A stretch of DNA of 64,000 bases from IMGVR_UViG_3300035212_003113:1-64000; one strand, 5' to 3'; positions 30-62,566 are shown, counted from the first letter of the stretch. Program-made: numbers and translations. Notes: generated by a model not told the origin, from the letters alone.

Positions 30-494
30 ATGAAACTAGACGTCTGGTCTCTCCTCGATGCTGGTGGCGTCTTTCAATACGGAAGGTACGAGATCAGGAA
101 CAGTAATGGCTTGCTTCACCGGGATGACGGCCCTGCTGCCATCTTTCCTGATGGCACTCAGCTTTGGTACCGGAATGGCTTGCTTCACCGGGATGATGGC
201 CCTGCTGCCATAGAGTCTAATGGTATACGATACTGGTACCGGAATGGCGAGCGTCACCGGGATGACGCCCCTGCTATCATCTGTCCTGATGGTAGTTGTC
301 ATTGGTACCGTGATGGCCAGCGTCACCGGGATGACGGGCCTGCTGCTATCTATCCGGATGGTACTCGGCTTTGGTATCGGCATGGCATGCGTCACCGGGA
401 AGACGGCCCAGCTATCATCTATCCTGATGGTAAGGGGTCTTGGCACCTGAATGGCGCCTATCAACACAAGGTAGGATGGATAAGTGAAACTTGA
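30..494 (+). CDS. HRxDGPA-repeat protein (5 repeats)
   Basis: 23-aa HR(D/E)DGPAxxYPDGxxxWYRNG repeats; N-term MKLDVW-SLLDAGG (lacks the ~5-aa EAISS-type segment of its paralogs). Confidence 0.85.
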   Translation: MKLDVWSLLDAGGVFQYGRYEIRNSNGLLHRDDGPAAIFPDGTQLWYRNGLLHRDDGPAAIESNGIRYWYRNGERHRDDAPAIICPDGSCHWYRDGQRHRDDGPAAIYPDGTRLWYRHGMRHREDGPAIIYPDGKGSWHLNGAYQHKVGWISET

Positions 495-951
495 TGCCTG
501 GGAAGCCATCTCATCCCTCATTGCAGCCGGCGGTGTCTTTCAATACGGAAGGTATCAGATTGTAGATAGTAATGGCGAGCTTCACCGGGAAGACGGACCT
601 GCTGTTGTATATCCACACGGTACTCAGTATTGGTATCGTAGCGACCAGCTACACAGGGATGATGGTCCTGCTATTATCTATCCGGATGGTAGTCAGGAAT
701 GGTACAGGAATGGCAAGCTCCACCGGGACAATGGGCCTGCTGTTGTATATCCAGATGGCACTCAGCATTGGTACCGGAACGACGAGCCTCACCGGGATGA
801 CGGGCCTGCTACCATCTATTCAAATGGCACTCAGAAATGGTACCGGGATGGCAAGCCTCACCGAGAAGACGGGCCTGCTATCATTTATTCAGACGGTACT
901 AAATCCTGGTATTTGAATGGCAAACTCCAGAAATGGCAAAATCCAGAGTAA
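484..951 (+). CDS. HRxDGPA-repeat protein (5 repeats)
   Basis: GTG start, MKLDAWEAISSLIAAGG N-term, 23-aa repeats. Confidence 0.85.
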   Translation: MKLDAWEAISSLIAAGGVFQYGRYQIVDSNGELHREDGPAVVYPHGTQYWYRSDQLHRDDGPAIIYPDGSQEWYRNGKLHRDNGPAVVYPDGTQHWYRNDEPHRDDGPATIYSNGTQKWYRDGKPHREDGPAIIYSDGTKSWYLNGKLQKWQNPE

Positions 952-958
952 AAAATAA

Positions 959-1282
959 ATGAAACTAGATGTCTGGGAAGCAATATCTTCCCTCCTCGAT
1001 GCCGGCGGTAAGTTTCAAGACGATAGGTATGAGGTCCGGGCTAGTAATGGCCATCTCCATCGGGGCGACGGGCCTGCTATCATATATGCAGACGGCACTC
1101 AGGAATGGTACCGGAATGGCGCGCTTCATCGGGGCGACGGCCCTGCGGTCATACTACCTAATGGCACTCAAAGCTGGTACCGGAATGGCCTGCGTCACCG
1201 GGCCGACGGTCCTGCTATCATCTATCCAGATGGTGATCAGGAATGGTACCGGGATGGCAATCGTCACTGGGTAGATAAATGA
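959..1282 (+). CDS. HRxDGPA-repeat protein (3 repeats)
   Basis: shared N-term plus repeats. Confidence 0.85.
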   Translation: MKLDVWEAISSLLDAGGKFQDDRYEVRASNGHLHRGDGPAIIYADGTQEWYRNGALHRGDGPAVILPNGTQSWYRNGLRHRADGPAIIYPDGDQEWYRDGNRHWVDK

Positions 1283-1575
1283 AACTAGAAGTCTGGGAAG
1301 ACATATTCTCCCTCATTGAAGCAGGCGGTACCTTTCAAAACGGAAGGTACGAGCTTACAAATAATAATGGAAAGATTCACCGGGATGGCGGCCCAGCTCT
1401 GATATATCTGGACGGTAGGCGCTATTGGTACCAGAATGGCCTGCGTCACCGGGCCTACGGTCCTGCTCTTACATATCCCGATGGCAGACAGTATTGGTAC
1501 TGGAACGGCGCGCTTGTTGATGAGCGGATCGGGGAGGGTTATCGTCAATCCGGTTCCACCGGGAAGATAAAATGA
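1279..1575 (+). CDS. HRxDGPA-repeat protein (2 repeats)
   Basis: shared N-term plus repeats; ATGA overlap. Confidence 0.85.
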   Translation: MKLEVWEDIFSLIEAGGTFQNGRYELTNNNGKIHRDGGPALIYLDGRRYWYQNGLRHRAYGPALTYPDGRQYWYWNGALVDERIGEGYRQSGSTGKIK

Positions 1576-1967
1576 AACTAGATCTCTGGGAAGCCTTGTC
1601 ATCTATCATCGAAGCAGGTGGTGTCTTTCGAAACGGAATATATGAGATCAGGAATAGTAATGGCATGATTCACCGGGATGACGGACCTGCCATTATATCT
1701 CAAGACGGTAGGCACTATTGGTACCGGGATGGCGTGCTTCATCGGGAAGACGGGCCTGCTATCGCATGTCCAGACGGTACTCAGGAGTGGTACCGGAACG
1801 GTACTATTCATCGGGATGGCGGGCCTGCTCTTATATATCAGGATGGTACTCAGGTTTGGTATCAGAATGATGAGATTCACCGTGATGATGGCCCTGCTAT
1901 TATCCATCCAGATGGCACTGAGATTTGGTGCCAGGATGGCCAGCGTAAACATAAGGCAGGAGACTAG
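1572..1967 (+). CDS. HRxDGPA-repeat protein (4 repeats)
   Basis: shared N-term plus repeats; ATGA overlap. Confidence 0.85.
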   Translation: MKLDLWEALSSIIEAGGVFRNGIYEIRNSNGMIHRDDGPAIISQDGRHYWYRDGVLHREDGPAIACPDGTQEWYRNGTIHRDGGPALIYQDGTQVWYQNDEIHRDDGPAIIHPDGTEIWCQDGQRKHKAGD

Positions 1968-2495
1968 ATGAAACTAGACGTCTGGAAAGCAATATCCTCC
2001 CTCCTCGATGCTGGCGGTAAGTTTGAGCACGGAAGATACCAGATCAGGAACAGTAAGGGCCATCTTCACCGGGAAGACGGGCCTGCTGAGGTATTCCCTG
2101 ACGGCTTCCAATACTGGTACCGGAATGGCGTGCTCCACCGTGATGACGGGCCTGCTGAGGTATTCCCTGACGGTAGGCAATGCTGGTACCGGAATGGCCA
2201 GCTACACCGGGAAGACGGGCCTGCCATTGTAGATCCGGATGGCAGTCATCATTGGTACCGGAATGACAAGATTCATCGGGATGATGGACCAGCTATCATT
2301 CATCCAGATGGTGAACAGCATTGGTACCAGAACGACGAGCCTCACCGGGAAGATGGGCCTGCTGTTATATTTTCAGACGGCAAACAATTTTGGTACCGGA
2401 ATGGCAAGCCTCACCGGGATGATGGACCAGCTATCATCTATCCAGACGGTACTCAGAAATGGTATCTGAATGGCAAACTTCAGAGTAAAAAATAA
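1968..2495 (+). CDS. HRxDGPA-repeat protein (6 repeats)
   Basis: shared N-term plus repeats. Confidence 0.85.
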   Translation: MKLDVWKAISSLLDAGGKFEHGRYQIRNSKGHLHREDGPAEVFPDGFQYWYRNGVLHRDDGPAEVFPDGRQCWYRNGQLHREDGPAIVDPDGSHHWYRNDKIHRDDGPAIIHPDGEQHWYQNDEPHREDGPAVIFSDGKQFWYRNGKPHRDDGPAIIYPDGTQKWYLNGKLQSKK

Positions 2496-2843
2496 ATGAA
2501 ACTAGATCTCTGGGAGGCTATCTCATCTCTCCTCCAAGCCGGAGGTGCCTTTCAACACATGAGGTACGAGATCAGGAATAATCATGGCGGGCTTCACCGG
2601 GATGATGGACCTGCTGTCATATATCCAAATGGCAAGCAGGAGTGGTACCGTAATGGCCAGCTTCACCGGGATGATGGACCTGCCGTCATATATCCAAGTA
2701 GTCAATACTGGTATCGCAATGGCCTGATTCATAGGGATGATGGTCCAGCAATTACATATTCAGATGGTGCTCAGTTCTGGTACCTGAATGGCAAGCGCTT
2801 TGGGGAAGATGAAAATGAAGATCCCGAGGAATACTTCCTGTAA
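2496..2843 (+). CDS. HRxDGPA-repeat protein (3 repeats)
   Basis: shared N-term plus repeats; acidic tail. Confidence 0.85.
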   Translation: MKLDLWEAISSLLQAGGAFQHMRYEIRNNHGGLHRDDGPAVIYPNGKQEWYRNGQLHRDDGPAVIYPSSQYWYRNGLIHRDDGPAITYSDGAQFWYLNGKRFGEDENEDPEEYFL

Positions 2844-2944
2844 GGCAAACTACTCCAGTAATCCACACATGAGGCATGCTGGCACACCATGTCCACAAAA
2901 AAGAAAATACTCACAGGACTGAGAGCTGACACGACGACCCGGCC

Positions 2945-2970
2945 CTAAAGCCGGAGTCCCCCGATCCTGA
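2945..2970 (+). promoter_or_regulatory. CTAAA-N13-GATCCTGA motif copy 1
   Basis: CTAAA gccggagtccccc GATCCTGA aggt CGA; promoter role inferred. Confidence 0.65.
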
Positions 2971-3018
2971 AGGTCGAACCCGCCGCAATCGACCGCATCA
3001 CTAACCAGCAACAATAGG

Positions 3019-3572: not shown

Positions 3573-3887
3573 ATGATTTCTCTACCATTTCATTCCATCA
3601 GCGAGCGACGCCCTAGCGACGGGCAAGAAGTGGCCTGGATTAGACGTGGAGCGGCATTTGGTTTTGATTCTTTCGAGATTCGCTATGATACCGCAGATTA
3701 TTGCTGGTTTGAACTAGGCGAAGATGGCGAGCACAACGGCACCCAGATCGGCTACAGCGGCGAAGAATCTCTTGAAGGTTGCCGCCTAGAAGTAATGTTC
3801 GGGAATGAAACCGCAGACCCGGAAACTCTCTGGTGTTCCATGGAAGAAATCTGGAAGATTCTTGACACAGAAAATCCGCAGCCGTGA
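3573..3887 (+). CDS. hypothetical protein
   Basis: ORF tiling between neighbours; start at second Met of track ORF. Confidence 0.7.
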   Translation: MISLPFHSISERRPSDGQEVAWIRRGAAFGFDSFEIRYDTADYCWFELGEDGEHNGTQIGYSGEESLEGCRLEVMFGNETADPETLWCSMEEIWKILDTENPQP

Positions 3888-4147
3888 AGCTGGATGACTG
3901 GGAGATGCGGGTCGCATTTGCTAAGGAAGACTGGCCGGAGGTTATTTCTATTATGGAATCTACCTTCGGTATCTCCCTGGTTGGCAGACCTACAAGAATC
4001 AATAGAGGCTTTTCTCAGTACCCAGAGATCTGGATCTGCATGCCACGCGGCGGCGCTGAATACGGTTGGTCAGGCCGATCCGGCTTTACCCAGGGACCGC
4101 TAGGCATTCCGATAGGCGAAGATATACAAATCTTTACCACAAAATAA
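3884..4147 (+). CDS. family A paralog
   Basis: MKLDDWEMRVAFAKEDW...TFG...YGW...GF. Confidence 0.8.
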   Translation: MKLDDWEMRVAFAKEDWPEVISIMESTFGISLVGRPTRINRGFSQYPEIWICMPRGGAEYGWSGRSGFTQGPLGIPIGEDIQIFTTK

Positions 4148-4649: not shown

Positions 4650-5036
4650 ATGAAACTTGATACCTGGGAAACTATTTCTTCAATCATTGAAGCCGGTGGT
4701 GTTTACAAAAACGGGTATTACTGCGTTCGCAACAGCAGGGGCCGGCTTCACCGGGATGACGGACCCGCTGCCATATATCCAGATGGTACTCAGTGTTGGT
4801 ACCAGGATGGCGGGCTTCACCGGGGTGATGGGCCAGCTATTATCTATCCAGATGGTACTCAATACTGGTGCCGGAATGGCAAGCGTCACCGGGATAACGG
4901 ACCAGCTATTATCTATCCAGATGGTACTCAGGAATGGTACAGGGCTGGACAGAGAGTGCCAGCCCCGCCCGCCCTAAAGCCGGACCCGCCCGATCCTGAG
5001 CGGTGCCCCGAACGCCACCAACAAGGAGCAATATGA
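4650..5036 (+). CDS. HRxDGPA-repeat protein (3 repeats)
   Basis: shared N-term plus repeats; C-term reads through motif copy 2. Confidence 0.85.
   Translation: MKLDTWETISSIIEAGGVYKNGYYCVRNSRGRLHRDDGPAAIYPDGTQCWYQDGGLHRGDGPAIIYPDGTQYWCRNGKRHRDNGPAIIYPDGTQEWYRAGQRVPAPPALKPDPPDPERCPERHQQGAI
4974..4999 (+). promoter_or_regulatory. motif copy 2
   Basis: CTAAA gccggacccgccc GATCCTGA. Confidence 0.6.
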
Positions 5037-7758: not shown

Positions 7759-7967
7759 TGGAATCCCCACACGCCAGCAACATAGACTTCATGATAAAAG
7801 CTCTGGAGTCTAATCCAGATAAGAAGTTTATTGTTCTAGAAGGCAGCGGTCCCGGAGATACTCTGCTGATTGTCTGGCGGAGCGCCAACGAACGAGCGCC
7901 CGGACAATACTACGAGATCCGCGTTGCAGAGATCAAAGAAACTGCTTTCATTCAGGTGAGCAAATGA
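7758..7967 (+). CDS. hypothetical protein
   Basis: TGATG overlap. Confidence 0.6.
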   Translation: MESPHASNIDFMIKALESNPDKKFIVLEGSGPGDTLLIVWRSANERAPGQYYEIRVAEIKETAFIQVSK

Positions 7968-8272
7968 AACTGGACGCTTTCGCTTTGCGAAACGCTGTTG
8001 CAAACAAGGACATAAAAACAATCCTTGATTTGTTCGCAGTGCATTTTGAAGACATAGCCCGCCGGAAGGATGAGCAATGGCAAATAAAGATTTGTCCGTG
8101 GGAACCGCTAGGAATGCTGCGACTAAGAACATCTAGCGGATCTTCCTGCTGGAACGGCCTTGATTACTTCAATGACAGTAAGCTTTACTCTCGTAATGGG
8201 ATAAACCTCATTATGTTTGCCCCGGATTTCTGTAGTGAAACTTGTTCTATTGTTACTGGCACAACTAGATGA
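7964..8272 (+). CDS. family A paralog
   Basis: MKLDAFALRNAV...HF...CW. Confidence 0.7.
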   Translation: MKLDAFALRNAVANKDIKTILDLFAVHFEDIARRKDEQWQIKICPWEPLGMLRLRTSSGSSCWNGLDYFNDSKLYSRNGINLIMFAPDFCSETCSIVTGTTR

Positions 8273-8483
8273 CGCCGGCGATAAGACAGGCATGATTGCC
8301 GCCATAGCCCACTACTTTGGTATCCCTCTACCAAACAATGTCCGCGACATGCGCGACAAGGGAGATGCGTGGAGCCTGCTTGTGATTAGCTATGGCAACA
8401 ATTGCTATTATTTTTACGCTAATGGATCGTCTTCAGTTATTGATTTCAAAGCACCGCTAGATAATATAGGTACCATCTTCTAG
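8235..8483 (+). CDS. family A paralog (divergent)
   Basis: GTG MKLV...AHYFGI. Confidence 0.6.
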   Translation: MKLVLLLLAQLDDAGDKTGMIAAIAHYFGIPLPNNVRDMRDKGDAWSLLVISYGNNCYYFYANGSSSVIDFKAPLDNIGTIF

Positions 8484-8485
8484 CC

Positions 8486-8752
8486 ATGAAGCTACTTGAC
8501 CTCCAACTGGACGAAGCATTTGCTGTCCGTGATTATGACGGCATGGTGACGCTAGTTGCGCAGCACCTAAGCATACGGCTCCCAAGAGAGAGGGCGGCTA
8601 TAGATACATCTAGTCCCGGCAACTGGCGCTGGGGCCGAGTGGTTATTTATCAAGATGGCTCCCGCTATATCTATTGCCGTGGTGGTGGCAGTAGAACAAG
8701 TCCTACTGTTTCCATCTTTGATTGCGGAATCATATCAGAGTTGCCAAGATGA
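8486..8752 (+). CDS. family A paralog
   Basis: MKLLDLQLDEAF..RDY...HL. Confidence 0.7.
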   Translation: MKLLDLQLDEAFAVRDYDGMVTLVAQHLSIRLPRERAAIDTSSPGNWRWGRVVIYQDGSRYIYCRGGGSRTSPTVSIFDCGIISELPR

Positions 8753-9039
8753 AGCTAGAGTCGTATGCTATGCGCGAGGCGCTGGAGGCCGGAGATACGG
8801 CCACCGCTGTGCGCGTGCTTGCGACCTACTATGGCTTTCCTGATCCGGTAGAAATACCGATTACCGTAATCGGCAAAAACATGCCGCCTTTTGAAAGAGA
8901 AAGACGCCTGCTATTCTGGTGCGGCGACGACTTCTATGAGTGGAGTTCTGAGTCCGGCTTTGACCGGGGCGTGCATCCTTATTCCCTAGGCAGCGACGTA
9001 GCACCGAGCCGCATAGAAAGCATCATTCTTTGGAAATAG
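8749..9039 (+). CDS. family A paralog
   Basis: MKLESYAMREAL...YYG...YEW...GF. Confidence 0.8.
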   Translation: MKLESYAMREALEAGDTATAVRVLATYYGFPDPVEIPITVIGKNMPPFERERRLLFWCGDDFYEWSSESGFDRGVHPYSLGSDVAPSRIESIILWK

Positions 9040-9727: not shown

Positions 9728-10009
9728 ATGAAGCTACAGTCTATCTTAGTAGCTGAACGGCTTGCTTCCAACGATATGCGAGGCGCATGCAATGCCCTGC
9801 TAGCGAACTTCAACCTCAGTGATCTGCCCACAGGTGCAGAAGTAAGAGTAAATCCCAGCGAAGTTCATGGGGATCATATAATTATTTACACTGCTGGGCA
9901 CTGGTACGAGTGGGGCGAGCGCATGGGATTCAGGACTGGACTGTCTTCTAGTTTCAGCCTACCAGCTACCCGTGCTGTAATCTGGTTGCGGAAGAGGAAG
10001 CCGACATGA
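9728..10009 (+). CDS. family A paralog
   Basis: MKLQS...NFNL...YEW...GF. Confidence 0.75.
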   Translation: MKLQSILVAERLASNDMRGACNALLANFNLSDLPTGAEVRVNPSEVHGDHIIIYTAGHWYEWGERMGFRTGLSSSFSLPATRAVIWLRKRKPT

Positions 10010-10109
10010 TGCTGCTTGCTGGATTACTTGGTGTTGTTATTGTTGCTGCGGGCTTTCGAGAGGCTGCCCGCAAGCGGTTCCAAGGCACAGCGATAAAGGT
10101 ATTGCCACC

Positions 10110-10367
10110 ATGAAGCTAGACCGGTCTGCAATCATTCACGCCCTAGAGTCCGGCAACAATACAGGGGCCGTGCAAGTCTTGTTTCACTACTTCCGGCTTG
10201 GAGAAGTACCGGGGGATTTGCAAATAATAAGGCGCGTATCTCCTACTATGGAGATGATTTACTATAATGCGGAGTGGTATGGCTGGACAGCCGCACACGG
10301 CTTTCGCAAAAGCCGACTGCCACAAGTGCAAGATCCCCCGCTAGTACAGATATGGTTTCCGCTATGA
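10110..10367 (+). CDS. family A paralog
   Basis: MKLDRS...HYF...YGW...GF. Confidence 0.8.
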   Translation: MKLDRSAIIHALESGNNTGAVQVLFHYFRLGEVPGDLQIIRRVSPTMEMIYYNAEWYGWTAAHGFRKSRLPQVQDPPLVQIWFPL

Positions 10368-10651
10368 AGCTGGAATCCTATGTACTACAAAACGCTATCT
10401 ATGAAGGGCGGCACGAAGAAGCAGTCCGAGGTCTGCTGCAACATTTTGGCATAAACTTACCGGATGCACAGCTGAACATACAGGCAGCAACCGATTCATG
10501 TTATGGCATTTACGTATGGGTAAGCACTAAGTACTTTGAATGGTACGAGGGTAGCTTTTTCTCTGCAAGCTCTTATGTGAGAGGAACGCCATTGCGCGCA
10601 GAAGTAGTAATCGCAACGGTATGGATACGAAGCAAAAATGAAAATCTCTGA
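10364..10651 (+). CDS. family A paralog
   Basis: MKLESYVLQNAIYEG; close to 11566. Confidence 0.8.
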   Translation: MKLESYVLQNAIYEGRHEEAVRGLLQHFGINLPDAQLNIQAATDSCYGIYVWVSTKYFEWYEGSFFSASSYVRGTPLRAEVVIATVWIRSKNENL

Positions 10652-10832
10652 GTGGGCAGTACAGGATGCAGTAGACAGCGGAGACTTCTCCCGCATACTA
10701 CCCATTCTGATTGAGCATTATGGCGTAGGCAGGATTCCCGACTGGGCTGATCCGCAACACGAGCATCCACTTAGTTGCCGCATATGTCAGATGATCCGCC
10801 CTTGGTTGTTTGCAAAAATGGACAGCAAGTGA
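10638..10832 (+). CDS. family A paralog (short, lacks YxW-GF half)
   Basis: MKISEWAVQDAV...EHYG. Confidence 0.6.
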   Translation: MKISEWAVQDAVDSGDFSRILPILIEHYGVGRIPDWADPQHEHPLSCRICQMIRPWLFAKMDSK

Positions 10833-11083
10833 AACTAGATACCTGGGAAGCCGTATCTTCTCTCCTCGATGCCGGTGGTAAGTTTTTTATCGATAAGTAT
10901 TGCCTTGTAAATGACAAAGGTCACTATCATCGGGAAGACGGCCCAGCTGTCATATATCCTAATGGCGATCAGTTTTGGTTGCGCAACGATAAGCTTCACC
11001 GGGAAGACGGCCCGGCTGTCGTCTATTCAGATGGTAAAAAACATTGGTACCTGGATGGTCGACTCCAGCGGGCAGACAAATGA
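10829..11083 (+). CDS. HRxDGPA-repeat protein (2 repeats)
   Basis: GTG MKLDTWEAVSSLLDAGG. Confidence 0.85.
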   Translation: MKLDTWEAVSSLLDAGGKFFIDKYCLVNDKGHYHREDGPAVIYPNGDQFWLRNDKLHREDGPAVVYSDGKKHWYLDGRLQRADK

Positions 11084-11484
11084 AACTTGATATCTGGGGT
11101 GCAATAGATTCTATCCTTGAAGCTGGTGGAAAGTTTTATCAAGGAAAGTATGTCTTTCTAAATGATAATGGTGAGCTTCACCGGGAAGATGGGCCTGCTG
11201 TTATAGAGCCGGATGGTACTCAGGAGTGGTGCCGAAATAACAAGCTTCATCGTGATGATGGACCTGCTATTATATGCCCTGATGGTAGTCAATATTGGTA
11301 CCAGAATGGTGAGCTTCACCGGGATAAAGGTCCCGCTGTATTGTATCCAGATGGTAGTCAGCTTTGGTACCGGAATGGCGAGATTCATCGGGATGGCGGG
11401 CCTGCTGCCGTTTATCCGGATGGCACTCAGCTTTGGTACCGTAATGGCAAGAAGCGCCGTACCGGGCCGGGCAGCAAAGGATAA
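11080..11484 (+). CDS. HRxDGPA-repeat protein (4 repeats)
   Basis: MKLDIWGAIDSILEAGG. Confidence 0.85.
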   Translation: MKLDIWGAIDSILEAGGKFYQGKYVFLNDNGELHREDGPAVIEPDGTQEWCRNNKLHRDDGPAIICPDGSQYWYQNGELHRDKGPAVLYPDGSQLWYRNGEIHRDGGPAAVYPDGTQLWYRNGKKRRTGPGSKG

Positions 11485-11565: not shown

Positions 11566-11859
11566 ATGAAGCTGGAATCCTATGTACTGCAAAGCGCCAT
11601 CTACGAAGGCCAGTACGAAGAAGCGGTGCGCCTGCTGCTGCAACATTTCGGCATAAACTTACCAGGTGTGCAGCTCATCATACAGACCGAACATGATATA
11701 GGCTACGGCATTAGGGCTTGGGTTGGCTCAGATCCCTATGAATGGTATGAAGGTAATTTTTATTTTCCTGCGCCTGACTGGAACACTGACCGGGATTACA
11801 GCAGAGTAAAGATCGTAAGCGCTACGGTTTGGAGCAAGTACAAGCTCAAGAACTCATGA
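11566..11859 (+). CDS. family A paralog
   Basis: MKLESYVLQSAIYEG; close to 10364. Confidence 0.8.
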   Translation: MKLESYVLQSAIYEGQYEEAVRLLLQHFGINLPGVQLIIQTEHDIGYGIRAWVGSDPYEWYEGNFYFPAPDWNTDRDYSRVKIVSATVWSKYKLKNS

Positions 11860-11889
11860 TATACAACTTACTGACAGGTCGGGCCGGCC

Positions 11890-11915
11890 CTAAAGCCGGT
11901 GCCGCCCGATCCTGT
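11890..11915 (+). promoter_or_regulatory. motif copy 3
   Basis: CTAAA gccggtgccgccc GATCCTGT aggt CGA. Confidence 0.65.
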
Positions 11916-12023
11916 AGGTCGAGCCGGTCGCCGCCTCCGGTAAATGCAAGTGGCGGAGAGACAGGAACCAAAACCCCTAATGGTTAGGGGCTAGGCGAAT
12001 GTCCATCAGAAAAGGAAGAGCAC

Positions 12024-14076: not shown

Positions 14077-14091
14077 CAGAGCGCCCCGGCC

Positions 14092-48235: not shown

Positions 48236-48236
48236 G

Positions 48237-48491: not shown

Positions 48492-48529
48492 TGTAAATTC
48501 CAGCGATAGAGAATGGGATCGGTGTCTGC

Positions 48530-49906: not shown

Positions 49907-49922
49907 TGCGCCGAGGTTGCCA

Positions 49923-50228: not shown

Positions 50229-50360
50229 AGCCCTAGGCGAAAGTCGCTGGACAGACTGCATGCCGGGCTTAAAGAAGCCTGTTGGTTTGAAACTGGCGAA
50301 ACCACATTATTATCCAGATCTCACGAGCTATACTCTGCTTATGTGTTCCTTAAGTAAAAT

Positions 50361-50621
50361 ATGAAGCTCGATAATTATCAAATGCTTGAGGCATTTCACG
50401 AAGAGAACTGGCGGAGCGCCATAGCTATGCTGAGGCAGCACTTCTGTCTGGAATCGCCCCCGCATCTTTGCTACGAGGTGCTAGAGCACGAACACCATGC
50501 TGAGTGCGTAGAGATCAGACAGGATAACGTGATCTATTATTGGCATGAATGCGATGGGTTTACGAATTCACGCAAGCTACCGACAACGAATGCAACGCTT
50601 ATATATTGCAGGCCGCCGTAG
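50361..50621 (+). CDS. family A paralog
   Basis: MKLDNYQM...NW...HF...YYW...GF. Confidence 0.8.
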   Translation: MKLDNYQMLEAFHEENWRSAIAMLRQHFCLESPPHLCYEVLEHEHHAECVEIRQDNVIYYWHECDGFTNSRKLPTTNATLIYCRPP

Positions 50622-50675: not shown

Positions 50676-51050
50676 GTGATGACAGCAGAGGACATTAAAA
50701 GCGCAGATTTGTGCCCTGTTACAGTTACGGAAGAAGCTCTGCTGCAATTCCGGGCAGCCTATTCTGCGGACCCAGGTCCCGATGTCTTTGGCATTAGGAT
50801 CGGCGTAAAGGGCGGTGGTTGCTCTGGATTCATGCACAATCTTGAGTTCATCAAACGGGCGGATGTCGACCCGGAAGAAGATTCCATTTATCTTGTGGGC
50901 GGGCTACACTTTGTAATCGACTGCTTCAGCGAGCCGTATTTAAAAGGCACTACGGTTGACTATCTGCGCACACTACAAGAAAGCGGCTTCAAGTTCCGTT
51001 CTGACGAGATCCGGCGCACATGTGGTTGCGGCGCTTCTTTTTCCAAGTGA
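50676..51050 (+). CDS. iscA: HesB/IscA-family Fe-S cluster assembly protein
   Basis: GVKGGGCSG and CGCGASF motifs. Confidence 0.9.
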   Translation: MMTAEDIKSADLCPVTVTEEALLQFRAAYSADPGPDVFGIRIGVKGGGCSGFMHNLEFIKRADVDPEEDSIYLVGGLHFVIDCFSEPYLKGTTVDYLRTLQESGFKFRSDEIRRTCGCGASFSK

Positions 51051-51346
51051 AGCTGGCATCGTATCTCATGCGAGAAGCCTTTGATGCCCAAGACTGGGAC
51101 AGTGTAATTTCTATTTTAATAGATCATTTCGGCTTACAAAGCGCAACACAACTAATCCAATCTTCGGCGCCTAAACTAGGTACTGGTTACTGGGACACTG
51201 CATTTATCTACATGGGCAAATCGAAATACTGCTGGAATTCCTATTGTGGCTTTTATCGCGGTATTGTATTTAATAGCTCAGGCCTTGACGCATTCGTGTG
51301 TATTGCCAAGGGGATAGGCGACGTCCCTCACACGGTTAGCAAATGA
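51047..51346 (+). CDS. family A paralog
   Basis: GTG MKLASYLM...DW...HFGL...YCW...GF. Confidence 0.8.
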   Translation: MKLASYLMREAFDAQDWDSVISILIDHFGLQSATQLIQSSAPKLGTGYWDTAFIYMGKSKYCWNSYCGFYRGIVFNSSGLDAFVCIAKGIGDVPHTVSK

Positions 51347-51627
51347 AGCTAGCATCTTATGCGATAGCCGATGCTATTGAGAGAAGAGACTGGCTAGGCG
51401 CAGCGAGATGCCTCGCAGATCATTTTGGCATAACTGGCTCTCTCCCGCCTCTTGAGCAGATAAAGCTAAAGGTGGATTGCGATACGGGCAACGTATGCTG
51501 CATGAGTATATCAGTTGGGCATCGCATCTATTATTGGGAAGAGGGCGGATGCTTTGAGGGCGGCCTCCTGCGCTACCCACGAGAAGTTCCTAGCATTTTT
51601 ATAGAGTGCCGCAATGAAAATACTTGA
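51343..51627 (+). CDS. family A paralog
   Basis: MKLASYAI...DW...HFGI...YYW. Confidence 0.8.
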   Translation: MKLASYAIADAIERRDWLGAARCLADHFGITGSLPPLEQIKLKVDCDTGNVCCMSISVGHRIYYWEEGGCFEGGLLRYPREVPSIFIECRNENT

Positions 51628-51880
51628 CTATGCTGTAGCAGATGCACTCTCCCGCAGGTCATGGCAGGAAGCTCTGCGAATACTGTTTCTTAATTTTAAT
51701 CTCGATCCTAACGGTGCCTCTTCTATTTTCATAGAAGAGTATGTCGCCAGGCGCCCTAGTGTGGCCTACCACGACGGCAATCGCATTTACTCGTGGACAG
51801 AGGGCTTTGGCTGGAAATGTTCTGATGGATGGACCAGTGGTCGACCGCGAGCATGGATCAAGATACCGAAAACCAAATGA
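51614..51880 (+). CDS. family A paralog
   Basis: MKILDYAV...SW...YSW...GF. Confidence 0.8.
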   Translation: MKILDYAVADALSRRSWQEALRILFLNFNLDPNGASSIFIEEYVARRPSVAYHDGNRIYSWTEGFGWKCSDGWTSGRPRAWIKIPKTK

Positions 51881-52176
51881 AACTCAACCATTACCGGATG
51901 ATTTGCGCGTTCGAGAGCAAAGACTGGAAAAGTGCTGTCGCGATCCTAGTGGATCAGTTCAAGCTTACAGGCATTAGCCAGGTACAGCTAGAGCATTATC
52001 CTGTTGTTCGTTTTCCAGGTTACCGAGAAATATTTCTTACTTTGCCTGGTCATCAGGGCTATTCTTGGATGCCAGAGGATTCTTTCATCAGTGAGATCTG
52101 TGGACCGGTTACCTGCCCCACGGTCAGCCTATGGTACCCGTCATCAGTAAGGCATAGTGAGGTTCTAGATCTTTGA
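51877..52176 (+). CDS. family A paralog
   Basis: MKLNHYRM...DW...YSW. Confidence 0.8.
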   Translation: MKLNHYRMICAFESKDWKSAVAILVDQFKLTGISQVQLEHYPVVRFPGYREIFLTLPGHQGYSWMPEDSFISEICGPVTCPTVSLWYPSSVRHSEVLDL

Positions 52177-56350: not shown

Positions 56351-56372
56351 GCACTTGGCAGCGGGGGCGGCC

Positions 56373-56398
56373 CTAAAGCCGGACCCGCCCGATCCCGT
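56373..56398 (+). promoter_or_regulatory. motif copy 16 (variant)
   Basis: CTAAA gccggacccgccc GATCCCGT gtgg CGA. Confidence 0.6.
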
Positions 56399-56432
56399 GT
56401 GGCGACCGCCGCGCCCTATGCCGGAGCCTATT

Positions 56433-56696
56433 GTGAAACTACTTGATTATGAGATAGGCGAAGCTGCGACCGCAGGCTCTACTTTGGACATGGTGCGCAT
56501 AGCTGCGCGATACATGGGCCTTAATGCTAATGCCGCCAGTCTAGAAGTTAAAAGAAGCAGATACTTAATAGACCTGCGGGATTGGACAAGGATAGAGATT
56601 CCCTGCGGAGATACCATCCATATACTTTATACAGATGGATTCATTCGCAGAATAAAAAACGATGGCTGTGTCTCTGCTCTTATATCTGGGTGGTAA
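56433..56696 (+). CDS. family A paralog (divergent)
   Basis: GTG MKLLDYEIGEAA...YMGL. Confidence 0.7.
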   Translation: MKLLDYEIGEAATAGSTLDMVRIAARYMGLNANAASLEVKRSRYLIDLRDWTRIEIPCGDTIHILYTDGFIRRIKNDGCVSALISGW

Positions 56697-59468: not shown

Positions 59469-59492
59469 GGAGTCTTGTACAACCGGGCGGGC

Positions 59493-59518
59493 CTAAAGCC
59501 CGCGTCGCTCGATCCTGA
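59493..59518 (+). promoter_or_regulatory. motif copy 17
   Basis: CTAAA gcccgcgtcgctc GATCCTGA agcc CGA. Confidence 0.65.
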
Positions 59519-59549
59519 AGCCCGAAAACGAACTGTAGGAGAACCTTTT

Positions 59550-60082: not shown

Positions 60083-60739
60083 GTGAAGATATTTCATATT
60101 TCTGATACGCACGGCTCAGGCTTCTGGGATACGCCGCTAGGAGCAGACATCGATGTTGTTGTTCATAGCGGCGATGCCTTTCCTAACTCTACTCGTGGTC
60201 ATGTTGCAACCGAGCAGGTATATCAGTCCGGCTGGCTTAAACAGTTTGTAGAACCAATACGGACATGGTTGAATGGTCGCCCATTCATTTATGTACCGGG
60301 TAATCATGACTATATCGAGTTTGCAGACTTCCTACCTGCGCACCGAATTGATACAGACCCTATTCATGTGGCAGGCAAGTCCTGGCGAGGATTTCGCCAG
60401 ATACCATGGATTCGCGGGGAGTGGGCGGGTGAAATACATGCGCCAGACATGCAGGATATAATCGAAAGCATCTTCGACTGCGATAGTTCACTCTCTGCCC
60501 CAGAGGGCGACGTACTGGTGTGTCACTCTCCACCCGCCGGTGTATTTGATGCCAGCCCTAATGGCCTTTTCCATTACGGTATCAGCGCACTGAGCAATGC
60601 CCTTCAATATAGGAACCACGCTTTCAAGGCTGTGCTTTTCGGTCACGTACACCAGGAAAAGTACTGCCAGATGCGAAGGATGGGTATTATATTTAGCAAT
60701 GCCGCAGACAATCCTGGCGGCACCGTGGAGCTGCCTTGA
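60083..60739 (+). CDS. calcineurin-like metallophosphoesterase
   Basis: SDTH, SGD, GNHD, HSPP, GHVH. Confidence 0.85.
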   Translation: MKIFHISDTHGSGFWDTPLGADIDVVVHSGDAFPNSTRGHVATEQVYQSGWLKQFVEPIRTWLNGRPFIYVPGNHDYIEFADFLPAHRIDTDPIHVAGKSWRGFRQIPWIRGEWAGEIHAPDMQDIIESIFDCDSSLSAPEGDVLVCHSPPAGVFDASPNGLFHYGISALSNALQYRNHAFKAVLFGHVHQEKYCQMRRMGIIFSNAADNPGGTVELP

Positions 60740-61293
60740 AGCTTTCTGCTGCCGCTGCCCTAGTTGGAATTCCTGATGACTTCAGGCCAGCTAAGATAGG
60801 AGATCCATATAATTATCGTACCAAGATATTTGTACGCAATCGAGAATACATAAGAATCTTCTTACTGCAAGACGGCTCACTTTATTCAAAAGAATATGGC
60901 TACATGGCCAAGACTGATGGCGGGCGACTGACCCCAGACAGCTCTGTATCCAGAGGGCCGGCTATCCTAGTGTACTATCAGGATGGCTCCCCTTCTTCGC
61001 AGGCGTGGGCACGCGAGGGCGAGATTCATCGTGACAGCAGCAATGGTCCAGCACTGGTAAAGTATCACAAAGATGGAGATATGTATTCTGCTGAGTATCG
61101 GAATGGCGGGCGACTGCATCGTCCAAGGAAGCGAGGACCGGCTCTTTATTATGAGCGCGGCAGCGGTGATATTTACTTTGGCTTTTGGGAGGATGGCATC
61201 TGCATTGCAGAGTTCGAAGGGCCAATCCTAAAAGATTATGATCAGCCATTAGAGTTTTTTGAATCTAGTTATAAGAAAGTGCGGAGAAGTTAA
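60736..61293 (+). CDS. family D: MKL start plus divergent HRxxGPA repeats
   Basis: HRDSSNGPA, HRPRKRGPA. Confidence 0.7.
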   Translation: MKLSAAAALVGIPDDFRPAKIGDPYNYRTKIFVRNREYIRIFLLQDGSLYSKEYGYMAKTDGGRLTPDSSVSRGPAILVYYQDGSPSSQAWAREGEIHRDSSNGPALVKYHKDGDMYSAEYRNGGRLHRPRKRGPALYYERGSGDIYFGFWEDGICIAEFEGPILKDYDQPLEFFESSYKKVRRS

Positions 61294-61526
61294 TGAAGAA
61301 CGATATCCTTGGAATTGCACTACTTGCTGCTACGGCAGTTAACATTGCTATGTTTTTTGCCATCGCTGTTCCAGCGCTCGGTCTAGACGATGACGAAGAG
61401 AAGCCTGATCCGCCTGTGCCAGAGTTCAATTACACTGAGTCCCAGGTCCATTTTCTGCGGCGTGTGACAGATCCGGTAGAGACCGGCGGTTTGCAATGCT
61501 CCCGTTCTTATGCCTGTGAACCTTGA
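61293..61526 (+). CDS. small membrane-anchored protein
   Basis: N-terminal hydrophobic helix. Confidence 0.55.
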   Translation: MKNDILGIALLAATAVNIAMFFAIAVPALGLDDDEEKPDPPVPEFNYTESQVHFLRRVTDPVETGGLQCSRSYACEP

Positions 61527-61888
61527 TCGGGTTTTTCCGCAACTGCGCGCACCCAGACCTTTTCCGGCATCTCTGCGATGTTAGGCTCGTAGTATTCTTC
61601 TTCCTGATCAAACCGGATCTCATATCCGGTTGCAGTACCCATTTCTGCGCGTAGCTTGGCCTTGGCCTGCTCTTTGGCAACCGTAACTCCGCGATCTACA
61701 TCGCTGCCTTGGATATCTGCATAGCCTACTGCTGCCACCTCGCCCGCTTTTAATCCTGCGTTTGGGCTGGCAATCCAGTCTGGCTTGTCCTGAGCCAGGC
61801 GCATAATAACGCCATCCAAGGCACTGGCGGCTTCAGTATGGCCGCGCTCGTCCAGAAAGTTTGCGATTTTTATCAGGTCTTTTAGCAT
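61508..61888 (-). CDS. leader-family protein
   Basis: MLKDLIKIANFLDERGHTEAASALDGVI. Confidence 0.75.
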   Translation of the reverse strand: MLKDLIKIANFLDERGHTEAASALDGVIMRLAQDKPDWIASPNAGLKAGEVAAVGYADIQGSDVDRGVTVAKEQAKAKLRAEMGTATGYEIRFDQEEEYYEPNIAEMPEKVWVRAVAEKPDQGSQA

Positions 61889-61927
61889 AGCATCCTCGCT
61901 CCATATCCAATAAATTCATAGTAAGAC

Positions 61928-62227
61928 ATGAAGCTGAACCTGGCCAGAATCATACTTGATGCGCCCGAAGGCTGGGCGGTGCGTAACATCGGCAGGCAGC
62001 TAATCCTACTAAGTCCTCATGGTAAACATCCGAACTGCGAAATAGTTTTTACACTGCGAAAAGATGGATCTTTAATCTATAAAGACTACTACGAAAACGG
62101 CATCTTCCACCGCGAAGACGGCCCAGCAGTAACTGTATATAGCGAGTGCGGTAATACTGCAGAAGAGCTTTTCTACTGTCAGGGAAAGCTGTTAAACAGA
62201 AAGTGCTACAAGGATGAAGCTGAATAA
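61928..62227 (+). CDS. family D paralog
   Basis: MKLNLA...PEGW...HREDGPA. Confidence 0.75.
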   Translation: MKLNLARIILDAPEGWAVRNIGRQLILLSPHGKHPNCEIVFTLRKDGSLIYKDYYENGIFHREDGPAVTVYSECGNTAEELFYCQGKLLNRKCYKDEAE

Positions 62228-62528
62228 AGCGGCGGTGATTGCCGGACTACCTGACGGCTGGGAGCTGCAATACGATGGCGATATCATTTTGTATCAGATG
62301 GGAGACGCAGCAGTACAGCATGAATTCAGCGGCAACAACTTAATCAGTATTTCACATTTCCTAGAAGGAGAGCTGCACCGCGACCCTGTCAACGGGCCAG
62401 CTTATATTTGGTGGGTCGGCGATCAGGTTTATGAGAAATACTTTTTTGCTGGACTGCCTGCTGCCAGTCCCGCTGGCCACTACGGCGTGGTAAAAAAAGA
62501 TGACGGCAGCGTGCTACTTACTTACTAG
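62214..62528 (+). CDS. family D paralog
   Basis: MKLNKA...PDGW...HRDPVNGPA. Confidence 0.75.
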   Translation: MKLNKAAVIAGLPDGWELQYDGDIILYQMGDAAVQHEFSGNNLISISHFLEGELHRDPVNGPAYIWWVGDQVYEKYFFAGLPAASPAGHYGVVKKDDGSVLLTY

Positions 62529-62540
62529 AGCTGGCCGGAC

Positions 62541-62566
62541 CTAAAGACCGGTCGGGCCGATCCTGA
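62541..62566 (+). promoter_or_regulatory. motif copy 18
   Basis: CTAAA gaccggtcgggcc GATCCTGA. Confidence 0.6.

Follow-up and report, generated by a model that had tools for sequence, protein, structure and literature searches.

The stretch analysed here, hereafter the window, comprises bases 1-64000 (64 kb) of IMGVR_UViG_3300035212_003113, a contig of 371,675 bp from a phage whose genome was also recovered in independent assemblies. It appears to be a fast-evolving, hyperplastic early-gene region of an uncultivated freshwater jumbo phage of ~372 kb, to which no close relative was found among sequenced phages. Of its 146 + strand genes, 62 start with M-K-L (35 in family A, 11 in family B and 16 others), and members of these small-gene families are interspersed, as a first-pass annotation of the window had described, with unrelated single-copy genes (AAA ATPase, DUF2201, M16 peptidase, ATP-grasp, PP-loop protein and tRNAs). 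The heavy expansion attributed in that annotation to several families holds for family A, with ~40 intact copies of ~95 aa each that make up 17% of the window, and, to a medium degree, for family B, with 10 MORN-repeat genes, whereas the remaining groups have only 2-3 members. The family genes are placed as follows.

30..2843, + strand: family B array of 7 tandem MORN-repeat genes, all starting MKL(D/E)xWE, with the repeat HRxDGPA in 23-aa / 69-nt units, 2-6 per gene
3884..4147, + strand: family A gene
4650..5036, + strand: family B gene
7964..9039, + strand: family A array of 4 genes (7964, 8235, 8486, 8749)
9728..10832, + strand: family A array (9728, 10110, 10364, 10638) with a 35-aa ORF in between
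10829..11484, + strand: two family B genes (10829-11083, 11080-11484)
11566..11859, + strand: family A gene, closest paralog 10364
13807..14076, + strand: family A gene
16844..17122, + strand: family A gene with a rare non-MKL start (MNSHHVKM...)
17930..18229, + strand: family A gene with a GTG start (VKL)
22075..22386, + strand: family A gene missed by the gene caller
27586..28152, + strand: two family A genes
28139..28815, + strand: two MKL/LKL genes of other small families, like family A in the N-terminal helix only
28812..30561, + strand: family A array of 6 genes, split by motif copy 7
30615..30949, + strand: decayed family A, a frameshifted copy (30615-30870) and a 25-aa N-terminal remnant (30875-30949)
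31323..31878, + strand: two family A genes
32256..32878, + strand: two family A genes
38915..39498, + strand: two family A genes
41776..42337, + strand: two family A genes, with TTG and GTG starts
47026..47638, + strand: two MKL/VKL genes of other small families, like family A in the N-terminal helix only
47647..48817, + strand: three family A genes (47647, 47945, 48530) with a minus-strand ORF between
49923..50621, + strand: two family A genes (49923, 50361)
51047..52176, + strand: family A array of 4 genes (51047, 51343, 51614, 51877)
56433..56696, + strand: divergent family A gene with a VKL start
60736..62528, + strand: MKL/LKL genes 60736, 61928 and 62214 of small families, weakly linked to family B by blastp clustering

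Family A is predicted to adopt an alpha2-beta5 fold (model pLDDT 91), in which helix 1 begins at residue 2 (pLDDT >90) and is packed into the domain; the model had no match in PDB or BFVD at E <= 0.001, and the modelled fold may be new. Its relatives fall in 306 public clusters, with 115 of 133 short matches beginning MKL, and M1, K2, L3 and W61 are conserved at 90% or more against a mean column identity of 12%. Public members throughout the family keep the MKL start, which is therefore no local scar. Mean identity among the copies is ~20% and the closest paralogs (11566 and 10364) share 57% of amino acids and 75% of DNA, the mark of old, very divergent copies rather than recent amplifications. 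Freshly duplicated members, which had been noted alongside decaying ones, are thus not in evidence in either family, the best pair in family B being 70% identical, while decay is apparent at 30615-30949. A single family A member scores just under the Pfam SUKH-1 threshold, a Pfam SUKH match was obtained for only 1 of 134 family members, and every protein language-model neighbour is a SUKH protein of ~90 aa; the family A model had no structural match, and a relationship with SUKH immunity proteins is no more than a lead. Family B has a MORN fold (Foldseek E 2e-6) and is similar to YwqK-type MORN_2 proteins. The families proved mutually unrelated, as had been claimed: the folds of A and B differ and their likeness is confined to residues 1-9 (hhalign), other MKL families match family A only across residues 1-12 to 1-21, and the ~16 further MKL genes are unrelated except for the N-terminal helix MKL(D/E)x(W/Y)E.

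At the DNA level, RTGAARCT has 70 matches in the window against 9.5 expected, 62 of them on the + strand. Called gene starts account for 53, three more begin uncalled family ORFs (7549, 10829, 22075) and one begins the remnant at 30875, in agreement with the shared 5' junction that had been described; the accompanying claim that the genes overlap the upstream stop applies to only 31 of 61 MKL genes (20 via ATGA). Six others abut the upstream stop, and for the remainder it lies 4 to >1000 nt away. The Shine-Dalgarno is weaker at MKL genes (-4.26 vs -5.17 kcal, p = 0.02), which, in combination with the ATGA or abutting stop-start chains, suggests translational coupling of chained MKL genes. Synonymous choice in codons 2-3 mostly follows genome usage, with the exception of CTA before GAN (15/31 vs 25%, p = 0.005), so that there is little to suggest that identical DNA is itself under selection. 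Rather than a bare 8-nt junction site, RTGAARCT encodes the beginning of a conserved N-terminal helix that is kept across the public clusters of the family.

The second recurrent element is a two-box motif, CCTAAA-N13-GATCCTG, present in 18 copies in the window. The search pattern CCTAAAG-N11-CGATCCT, allowing <=2 mismatches, gave 18 matches against 0.14 expected, every one on the + strand, and a profile made from 62 copies recovered the identical 18 (E <= 5e-6) with no significant minus-strand copy in the window.

2932..2978, + strand: motif copy 1, in a GC-rich imperfect palindrome
4964..5004, + strand: motif copy 2
11874..11922, + strand: motif copy 3
14076..14125, + strand: motif copy 4
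17873..17916, + strand: motif copy 5
23033..23081, + strand: motif copy 6, its internal TGA ending the upstream ORF 22499-23074
29902..29950, + strand: motif copy 7, its internal TGA ending the family A gene 29631-29942
32171..32218, + strand: motif copy 8, with a terminator-like hairpin after it (32212-32231)
33994..34042, + strand: motif copy 9
36262..36311, + strand: motif copy 10, head of the 36332 module; in another context in relative L002
38026..38073, + strand: motif copy 11
39750..39793, + strand: motif copy 12
40621..40667, + strand: motif copy 13, head of the 40708 module; in the sister clade this module follows the M16 gene
42583..42630, + strand: motif copy 14, head of a conserved AAA ATPase / DUF2201 / M16 peptidase block (42776-46954)
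49867..49911, + strand: motif copy 15, degenerate; ORF 49184-49906 terminates within it
56363..56405, + strand: motif copy 16
59481..59526, + strand: motif copy 17
62526..62569, + strand: motif copy 18

The first-pass annotation had placed a fixed motif about every 3.5 kb ahead of runs of + strand genes. The mean spacing is indeed 3.5 kb, but with a range of 0.9-7.3 kb it is not periodic, and while 14 of the 18 copies have the next + strand start 37-90 nt downstream, 3 of the 18 motif-headed units are without any MKL gene; there are 2-22 genes per copy. Elsewhere in the contig, exact matches occur only at 359-372 kb and 64-120 kb, adjoining the window. The 62 copies have in common only the two boxes at fixed spacing, a further block 3' of GATCCTG is semi-conserved, and six copies form a tandem run, 60-80 nt apart, in a non-coding stretch. 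All 18 window copies are intergenic or at gene ends on the coding strand, usually beginning directly after the upstream stop codon and ~40-90 nt before a Shine-Dalgarno and the next start, a layout that points to a promoter-type transcription-unit boundary. Since neither sigma-70-type promoters nor intrinsic terminators show enrichment in the window, another signal must drive these genes; to our knowledge, the CCTAAA and GATCCTG boxes fit no known promoter consensus.

Comparison with relatives at ~83-95% nucleotide identity supports a modular, plastic region, with changes of order, breakpoints at motif edges and gain or loss of genes at start codons. Core-gene order differs between the window and its sister clade, in keeping with the expectation that order would vary among relatives. 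The [motif-40708] and [motif-36332] modules lie in new contexts in relatives, DNA homology beginning at the motif 5' edge, and lineages 95% identical in DNA differ by two large indels (885 nt and ~1.9 kb), both ending at the motif 5' edge. Thus module-level breakpoints fall at this edge in 4 of 4 independent events, with the motif on ~3 of 40 gene junctions. Each variant arrangement was found again in independent assemblies and so is not a misassembly. Four single-gene indels were gene-precise, two of them with RTGAAR on both flanks. The expectation that gain and loss would begin at MKL starts was matched in part: 6 of 8 indel boundaries are at MK(L) starts vs ~45% expected, which is not significant, and 2 of the 4 gene-level indels have non-MKL boundaries. 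As the indel cassettes are MKL genes themselves, finding their boundaries at MKL starts is to some extent circular, and statistically the pattern cannot be told apart from gene-precise indels that selection has filtered. Over 20 kb, independent assemblies of this phage show 100% identity; shuffling is therefore slow, and the rapid copy-number change implied by an accordion-like library is not visible.

The best explanation, which we hold with slightly better than even confidence, combines a promoter-type motif, lineage-specific expansions of small proteins and general recombination among the region's own repeats. The small tally of events, only four with a motif and four gene-level indels, counts against it. 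The motif would be a phage-specific promoter-type regulatory cassette with invariant CCTAAA and GATCCTG boxes 13 nt apart, and where it lies, as it usually does, in a GC-rich imperfect palindrome, it may unite an attenuating hairpin with a promoter; the six tandem copies are like an early-promoter cluster. The units that it delimits would have been filled by expansion of family A, MORN family B and smaller families, and A, B and at least four smaller unrelated families would all begin with one N-terminal helix, M-K-L-(D/E)-x-(W/Y)-E. The region would then evolve via homology- or microhomology-driven recombination, in which motif copies probably serve as the sites of exchange by which entire promoter-plus-gene modules are moved, as the comparison with relatives indicates, and repeated 5' gene ends would permit gene-precise gain and loss of single cassettes, a route that is consistent with the data though not proven. 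A dedicated integron-like enzyme would not be needed. The families may well supply diversified early host-takeover or counter-defence proteins, a role as conjectural as that of the host-interaction effectors proposed in the first-pass annotation.

An alternative that deserves some weight, though we think it rather less probable, is an ordinary architecture in which the motif is an early promoter, MKL is an important N-terminal helix and their co-occurrence is coincidental to rapid gene turnover, indels being seen at gene boundaries because others are lethal or lost. The family-wide MKL start, the confident modelling of helix 1 as integral to the fold, the genome-like usage of codons 2-3, the non-significant excess of indel boundaries at MK(L) starts (which are ~45% of junctions) and the absence of strain-level variation all accord with it. 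It does not readily account for the four module-level events at so rare a junction type, nor for unrelated folds (alpha2-beta5, MORN and others) with the same first 9-20 residues, for which structure alone seems insufficient, nor for Leu at position 3 in 16 of 31 MK-starting genes outside the families. The shared helix could instead be a leader or targeting peptide that brings its proteins to a common destination, partner, chaperone or protease, by analogy with the capsid-targeting sequence of T4 internal proteins (packaging and injection). Shared 9-20 N-terminal residues on at least five unrelated protein bodies would suit such a role, as would the standing of the helix as the best-conserved part of family A and the consensus h-x-E-A at residues 8-11, which presumably resembles the T4-type prohead protease cleavage motif; we nevertheless regard it as doubtful, given that the helix is confidently modelled as packed into the domain with no detachable tail and that the genes lie in an apparent early region far from recognisable head genes.

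For the motif itself, action in RNA is conceivable, as a U-tract-less attenuator or terminator, a processing site such as those that RNase III cuts between T7 early genes, or an antitermination site. Its strict confinement to the coding strand right after upstream stop codons, the semi-conserved block 3' of GATCCTG and the long hairpin with CCTAAAG in the loop that GC-rich copies can form are compatible with this, these copies folding more strongly than shuffles (-21.0 vs -16.8 kcal) and the GATCCTG box pairing with the upstream flank in 29 of 62 copies. Yet 13 AT-spacer copies form no hairpin and retain both boxes at fixed spacing, a pairing test of each copy's own arms against those of other copies gave no copy-specific covariation (p = 0.14-0.5), RNAalifold returned no consensus structure for the copies and Rfam no match, and the six tandem non-coding copies fit promoters or protein-binding sites better, leaving an RNA role unlikely. 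Least probable by far is the integron-like model of the first-pass annotation, in which a recombinase encoded elsewhere inserts and excises promoterless MKL cassettes at RTGAARCT. The gene-precise indels, two with RTGAAR on either side, and the differing order among relatives would agree with it, and one sister lineage carries an IS607-type serine recombinase with TnpB; this element, however, is a self-contained insertion that is missing from the window and from L026. As that annotation had itself remarked, no integrase is visible, and the 64 kb hold no other site-specific recombinase, no attC-like palindrome or recombination site per cassette (the motif occurring once per 2-22 genes) and many promoters in place of a single Pc-type one. 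The supposed site is moreover coding sequence with protein-level conservation in 306 clusters, and half of the gene-level indels have non-MKL boundaries.

Contrary to the suggestion that no such system had been described, the promoter-bounded shuffling is of the kind known from T4-like phages, with PeSL-type cassettes and ordinary unequal recombination in paralog arrays as the closest known system. PeSLs are promoter-early stem-loop regulatory cassettes, ~50 of which are repeated between genes of each genome, mainly in hyperplastic regions 5' of ORFans; they consist of an upstream stop, promoter boxes that flank or overlap a stem-loop, a Shine-Dalgarno and a start, and breakpoints of insertions, deletions and replacements between relatives are located in them (Arbiol et al. 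2010, PMC2839356; Comeau et al. 2014, PMC4122927). The motif shares this anatomy, the concentration of intergenic cassettes in a hyperplastic region and the breakpoints, but its boxes (CCTAAA-N13-GATCCTG) do not follow the sigma-70 consensus, the spacing is 13 nt and not 17, the stem-loop is optional and without covariation, and it is a putative promoter in an uncultivated 372-kb phage without close sequenced phage relatives. In polyimmunity loci, SUKH and other immunity proteins that are only distantly related are encoded in tandem (Zhang et al. 2012, PMC3482391); the window resembles these loci in its long arrays of small, highly divergent paralogs among which unrelated small families are scattered, in content that varies among relatives, in probable co-transcription, and in the SUKH leads for family A and the YwqK-type MORN_2 likeness of family B; it departs from them in the near absence of Pfam SUKH matches (1/134), the lack of a structural match and of toxin genes nearby, and its place in the genome of a lytic-type phage instead of a bacterial chromosome. 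Integron arrays likewise hold small same-strand genes, mostly unassigned, with gene-precise gain and loss, but intI, attI and attC are lacking here, and the recurrent sequence is at the 5' coding end, unlike the 3' palindromic site of integrons. In Bacillus phage G, ~35 zinc-ribbon copies represent a lineage-specific expansion in a jumbo phage (Iyer et al. 2021, PMC7824862), and in the window, too, a single small-protein family has reached dozens of copies within the genome of a giant virus. These copies are old (~20% mean identity) and their N-terminus is common to unrelated families, unlike such expansions and the poxvirus 'genomic accordions', in which a small-protein family is amplified in a giant viral genome. 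In T4-type IP loci, the capsid-targeting sequence serves a few late proteins as a packaging signal and is cleaved; these loci too are hyperplastic loci of unrelated small proteins with a common ~10-residue N-terminal peptide starting MK, the cassettes diverging 3' of a common 5' module, whereas here ~60 genes per 64 kb lie in an apparent early region, with the helix predicted to be in a folded domain. Short conserved coding segments on otherwise unrelated modules are also found in polymorphic toxins, where VENN in CdiA and PxxxxDPxGL in Rhs precede the C-terminal toxin domain, and in Borrelia erp/mlp paralogs, with their upstream homology box plus leader. Such segments offer homology for cassette replacement, putatively so in the window, where, unlike toxin junctions, the segment makes up the initial 3-20 codons of small genes that stand alone.

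Our findings support the earlier reading of this region as a modular, shuffled gene library and argue against the integron-like mechanism that the first-pass annotation had attached to it. New here are a two-box motif, CCTAAA-N13-GATCCTG, the size and fold of a family of small proteins of about 95 residues beginning Met-Lys-Leu (MKL; family A), and an N-terminal helix common to unrelated folds. The DNA comes from a large freshwater phage that is uncultivated. Its window region is gene-dense, one-directional and composed mostly of tiny genes, with 146 of the 157 genes called by codon usage on the plus strand. The window corresponds to bases 1-64000 of the source contig (IMGVR_UViG_3300035212_003113; 371,675 bp), to which it is 100% identical at matching coordinates. 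This genome was independently assembled from an ENA sample (371,689 bp, beginning elsewhere on the map), from a Logan run and from additional JGI samples, and six other assemblies of the phage are 99.9-100% identical to the window over up to 20 kb, an identity that is uninformative on strain-level variation. Among 50,697 deposited phage genomes, megablast found no close relatives and tblastn matches were below 30% identity.

A search for CCTAAAG-N11-CGATCCT with up to two mismatches returned 18 matches in the window, all on the plus strand, against 0.14 expected. A profile built from 62 copies, drawn from the window, other parts of the same genome and relatives, recovered the same 18 (E <= 5e-6) and nothing significant on the minus strand; across these 62 copies only CCTAAA and GATCCTG, separated by 13 nt, are invariant. 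The mean spacing of 3.5 kb agrees with the interval first given, but single intervals range from 0.9 to 7.3 kb, so the motif is not periodic. The stop codon of the upstream gene lies directly 5' of the motif or within it (in three cases it is the TGA of GATCCTGA itself), and in 14 of 18 copies the next plus-strand start follows 37-90 nt 3' of the motif, often preceded by GGAG. Elsewhere in the genome, exact matches occur only at 359-372 kb and 64-120 kb, flanking the window. Given the strand bias, the position between a stop and a Shine-Dalgarno site or start, the fixed box spacing and a cluster of tandem copies bordering the region, the motif is probably a promoter class. That cluster, at locus L013 of the source contig (L013:2614-4632, about 361.6-363.7 kb, just 5' of the window on the circular map), packs some 14 copies into 2 kb that appear to be non-coding, including six tandem copies at 4294-4632 that are 59-81 nt apart with AT-rich spacers and no hairpin; it looks like an early-promoter cluster or a binding-site array. 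Neither sigma-70-type promoters (19 found, 18.4 expected) nor intrinsic terminators (20 found, 17.2 expected) are enriched in the window. The GATCCT box retains A2 and T6 of a -10 hexamer, and its 13-nt distance to the upstream box may recall activator-dependent phage promoters. A candidate factor for these unusual boxes, judged by its sequence, is the 191-aa protein encoded at 22499-23074 (+), which has a sigma-70 region-4-like helix-turn-helix (Pfam E 2e-6) and weak PHROG sigma-factor matches; it is 80% conserved in related phages of a sister clade, and its ORF terminates inside motif copy 6. Three further ORFs (33958-34059, 38000-38323 and 3019-3231) clustered together solely through read-through of the motif (...GLKPAPADP...); at least the first two are probably not genes, and 38000-38323 is called as one in public annotation.

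Most motif copies are embedded in a GC-rich imperfect palindrome. The GC-rich copies fold at -21.0 kcal against -16.8 kcal for shuffles, and GATCCTG pairs with an upstream CAGG(A)TC in 29 of the 62. A conserved RNA structure was considered and found no support: RNAalifold found no consensus structure among the copies, an arm-swap covariation test showed that the arms of a copy pair no better with each other than with those of other copies (p = 0.14-0.5), and Rfam gave no family match for the motif. As the 13 AT-spacer copies are also hairpin-free, we regard the hairpin as a property of the consensus and not as a demonstrated structure. Two other hairpins lie 3' of genes in the window: a perfect one of about 13 bp at 46960-47000, immediately downstream of the M16 peptidase gene and at a place taken by a motif copy in the sister clade, and a strong 12-bp GC stem with a T-run at 45440-45467, downstream of gene 45190-45432.

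The sister clade, recovered from IMG/VR and JGI metagenomes (loci L002, L026, L027 and L028) and extended with contigs L031-L036 by exact-protein matches, provides a record of rearrangement. Its core proteins are 64-98% identical to those of the window, its family A genes only 30-45% identical to any window copy. It comprises four sub-lineages, and each arrangement recurs in independent assemblies. The prediction that gene order would vary between relatives was borne out, in that core-gene order differs between the window and the sister clade and two modules stand in new contexts. The module formed by a motif and gene 40708 lies between genes 40414 and 41136 in the window; in the sister clade it immediately follows the gene for the M16 peptidase. 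The homologue of gene 36770 precedes the motif-36332 module in L002 and follows it in the window; in both modules DNA homology starts 5-15 nt before CCTAAA. Sister lineages at 95% DNA identity in turn show two large indels, one of 885 nt and the other of about 1.9 kb, and each ends at the 5' edge of a motif copy. The 885-nt insert has a degenerate motif on its other side, and its genes adjoin another motif copy in L002. Since only about 3 of 40 gene junctions bear a motif, the placement of all four module-level events at motifs is improbable by chance (roughly 3e-5, a rough figure).

Events of the single-gene type between relatives number four, all of them gene-precise:

L026, insertion of 257 nt, ending exactly at the ATG of an MKL gene
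L002, family A gene missing from L028, extending from 3 nt past the upstream stop to the next ATG
L026, extra family A gene, between two RTGAARCT starts
L028, insertion of 774 nt with two genes, flanked by ATGAAA and GTGAAG

Six of the eight boundaries of these indels fall at MK(L) starts. The proposal that gene gain and loss begin at MKL starts matches these boundaries; an excess over what gene-precise, selection-filtered indels would give is not seen, because the cassettes are themselves MKL genes and MKL starts make up about 45% of junctions. The relatives carry other mobile or variable content as well. One sister lineage has acquired an IS607-like pair, encoding a 417-aa TnpB/Cas12f-like protein and a serine resolvase, which is found neither in the window nor in L026; its locations are:

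L031:19400-20816 (-) and L033:12643-14059 (-), IS607-like pair, right after a shortened homologue of window 52197-52838

A minus-strand cluster of four genes (glycosyltransferase-like, DUF2827) in the sister clade, at L031:2367-6413 (-) and L032:886-4935 (-), has no counterpart in the window, and a module with a staphylococcal-nuclease-like gene occupies three different places depending on the lineage.

The sequence RTGAARCT occurs 70 times in the window against 9.5 expected. Of its 62 plus-strand sites, 53 lie at called starts, three at the starts of uncalled family ORFs and one at the head of a remnant, and 62 of the 146 plus-strand genes begin M-K-L when GTG and TTG starts and TTR leucine codons are counted. 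That unrelated families share a 5' end was thus correctly recognized, families A and B (the latter MORN-repeat MKL proteins) being alike only at residues 1-9. The sharing of RTGAARCT also stands, its extent of 8 nt less so, as in several families the common part is longer and corresponds to an N-terminal helix. Overlap with the upstream stop is likewise common (31 of 61 overlap, 20 of 61 as ATGA, and 6 abut) and not universal as first described, and the claim of freshly duplicated members is not supported, since identity between the best paralog pairs reaches only 57% (family A) and 70% (family B).

Several observations bear on what maintains these starts. MKL genes overlap or abut the preceding stop more often than other genes, an ATGA overlap by itself dictating that codon 2 begins with A, and they have weaker Shine-Dalgarno complementarity (-4.26 vs -5.17 kcal; p = 0.02). 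Their Lys and Leu codons at positions 2-3 follow genome usage, so selection for DNA identity as such is not seen at the junction, apart from an excess of CTA before GAN (15 of 31 vs 25%; p = 0.005). Leu nevertheless occupies position 3 in 16 of 31 MK-starting genes outside the families, far above its overall frequency. A role for 'ambush' stops in both other frames, by which translation of whatever gene lies upstream would be ended, was rejected, as they occur at 35% of MKL starts and 29% elsewhere (p = 0.47), leaving only the trivial ATGA. We conclude that MKL is kept at the protein or translation level.

Family A comprises 39 called genes by clustering and iterated profile search, to which an all-reading-frame segment search added two intact members, 22075 and 51614; the interval 30615-30949 holds one frameshifted and one truncated copy. 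In total, about 40 intact copies fill 17% of the window. An exhaustive profile search found at least 306 public clusters (50% identity), almost all of about 90 aa and aligned from residue 1, and 115 of 133 short public matches start MKL. In an alignment of 134 sequences, M1, K2, L3 and W61 are at least 90% conserved at a mean column identity of 12%, which makes the first three residues the most conserved feature of the family. The AlphaFold model is confident (pLDDT 91, pTM 0.80) and places five strands after two helices; Foldseek searches of the PDB and of predicted viral structures (BFVD) gave nothing at E <= 0.001. Family A is accordingly a large, previously unannotated family with a confidently predicted fold that lacks a structural match, and it readily suggests itself as a candidate for diversified roles in host interaction or counter-defence.

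Membership of the SUKH (SMI1/KNR4) superfamily was considered for family A. In the language-model comparison every neighbour is a SUKH protein of about 90 aa (score 0.92), with 157-163 shared features, under the guide value of 170. In Pfam scans of 36 and of 134 members, a single one in each set matched SUKH-1, its 23.5 bits falling short of the 25.4 cut-off, and apart from this one sub-threshold match, Pfam, the profile search of PDB sequences (empty) and Foldseek against the PDB and BFVD were negative. SUKH is therefore a lead and not a classification. The beta-half of the family (profile positions ~40-87) also repeatedly matches Ig_7 repeats of giant CHU_C / type IX secretion proteins (public proteins P0016, P0024 and P0112; 2115 aa, 14 stretches, E 5e-22), reflecting either distant kinship of the beta module or a common Y-x-W...G-F repeat pattern; as the phage uses strong Shine-Dalgarno sites, we set this match to giant Bacteroidota proteins aside as a clue to the host.

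Family B has 10 members, each with two to six 23-residue HRxDGPA repeats (a DNA period of 69 nt). It scores 38.7 and 42.2 bits against Pfam DUF6745 (cut-off 27). Its predicted structure (pLDDT 92) finds MORN1 structures at E 2e-6, and its Atlas neighbours are DUF6745 phage clusters, similar proteins being common in phages. These results place it with the MORN-repeat / DUF6745 phage proteins, with a predicted beta-hairpin solenoid fold. Where these genes lie, how small and diversified they are, and their likeness to immunity-protein families lead us to infer that both families are early host-takeover or counter-defence proteins.

The likeness between families A and B, confined to residues 1-9 (MKLDxWE), recurs more widely. 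When the 16 MKL genes outside both families were compared with family A by profile, they matched over residues 1-12 to 1-21 only, or not at all, so that at least four small families, in addition to A and B, have an N-terminal segment in common (1-9 up to 1-21), a helix of the form M-K-L-(D/E)-x-(W/Y)-E-h. One N-terminal helix on several unrelated folds is unusual and makes coupling, targeting and recombination directly testable. T4 internal proteins carry a common N-terminal capsid-targeting peptide, which the prohead protease removes, and they are packaged in the phage head. The occurrence here of unrelated small proteins that begin alike within a hyperplastic locus may recall them, and the helix is possibly such a leader peptide, as the same residues head otherwise unrelated proteins; mildly against cleavage and head packaging, the family A model packs the helix into the domain. 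A broader reading, in which MKL(D/E)x(W/Y)E would be a 'cassette adaptor' that serves at once as stop-start coupling signal, as partner or destination helix and as homology for body swapping, strikes us as improbable. If true, the region would be a phage diversity library of immunity-like counter-defence proteins, family A a new and very divergent SUKH-like fold, and the whole an analogue of polymorphic toxin/immunity systems that is organised at the 5' end and spread by promoter cassettes.

With respect to mechanism, integrons are defined by a tyrosine integrase (intI) with attI, an attC imperfect palindrome at the 3' end of each cassette and a single Pc promoter that serves cassettes lacking promoters of their own. 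In the window, no integrase or recombinase domain was found among scanned ORFs of at least 115 aa, the only recurrent palindromic motif appears once per 2-22 genes and upstream of genes, and RTGAARCT, unlike attC, is a coding 5' end; every defining integron feature tested fails. What we favor is shuffling that would proceed by general recombination at repeated promoter cassettes and also through repeated gene 5' ends, where the recurring MKL starts may incidentally provide microhomology. The first-pass annotation recognized no described system of this kind, yet promoter-bounded shuffling is already known in principle from the PeSLs of T4-like phages, composite promoter/stem-loop cassettes that number about 50 per genome, lie in hyperplastic regions upstream of ORFans, between the upstream stop and the downstream Shine-Dalgarno site, and act as exchange points (PMC2839356, PMC4122927). 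The motif resembles them in its many same-strand intergenic copies, its stop-to-Shine-Dalgarno placement, the limitation of its exact matches to this and neighbouring regions and the indel and replacement breakpoints at its 5' edge (two translocated modules and two large indels, four events only). It differs in its boxes (CCTAAA/GATCCTG with a 13-nt spacer, where PeSLs have host sigma-70 consensus -35/-10 boxes and a spacer of about 17 nt), in that the hairpin is optional, and in that the phage is unrelated; the PeSL class also includes demonstrated promoter/terminator activity and mini-circles that arise by exchange between cassettes. PeSL-type shuffling, described in cultured coliphages and vibriophages of the T4-like kind, would thereby extend to a clade of uncultivated 372-kb phages from freshwater that is unrelated to them, and its different promoter-like signal suggests a general route for accessory-gene turnover in large phages. 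For the long arrays of very divergent small paralogs, the comparison is polyimmunity loci (PMC3482391), which they resemble; jumbo phages, too, have large lineage-specific expansions (PMC7824862).

Beyond the small families, domain matches in the window include a MoxR-type AAA ATPase, a DUF2201 protein, an M16 peptidase, an R2K ATP-grasp protein, a PP-loop protein, an HNH endonuclease, a metallophosphatase, a SpoU methylase and the small sigma-70 region-4-like protein. A third set with an N-terminal module, proteins of 91-467 aa with no Pfam or PHROG matches, has a segment of about 35 residues, (I/L)Ax(E/D)LDxAG, in common:

14625-15332 (+), member of the (I/L)Ax(E/D)LDxAG set
19503-20234 (+), member of the set
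25286-26689 (+), member of the set
20280-21308 (-), member of the set
24783-25058 (-), member of the set
61508-61888 (-), member of the set

Five tRNA genes are present, four of them confirmed by Rfam; these include a tRNA-Ser at 25125-25212, to which ARAGORN assigns ACT, an unusual anticodon. For the tRNA-Thr at 12482-12551 there is an ARAGORN call only, its Rfam score staying below the gathering value. Amid the small-gene region sits a gene at 53010-56300 (+) with internal DNA repeats (53790 / 55089), whose 1096-aa product contains Laminin_G_3 (concanavalin-like) domains, three in number, and is similar in PHROGs to large proteins of other phages that belong to the virion or are associated with the baseplate.
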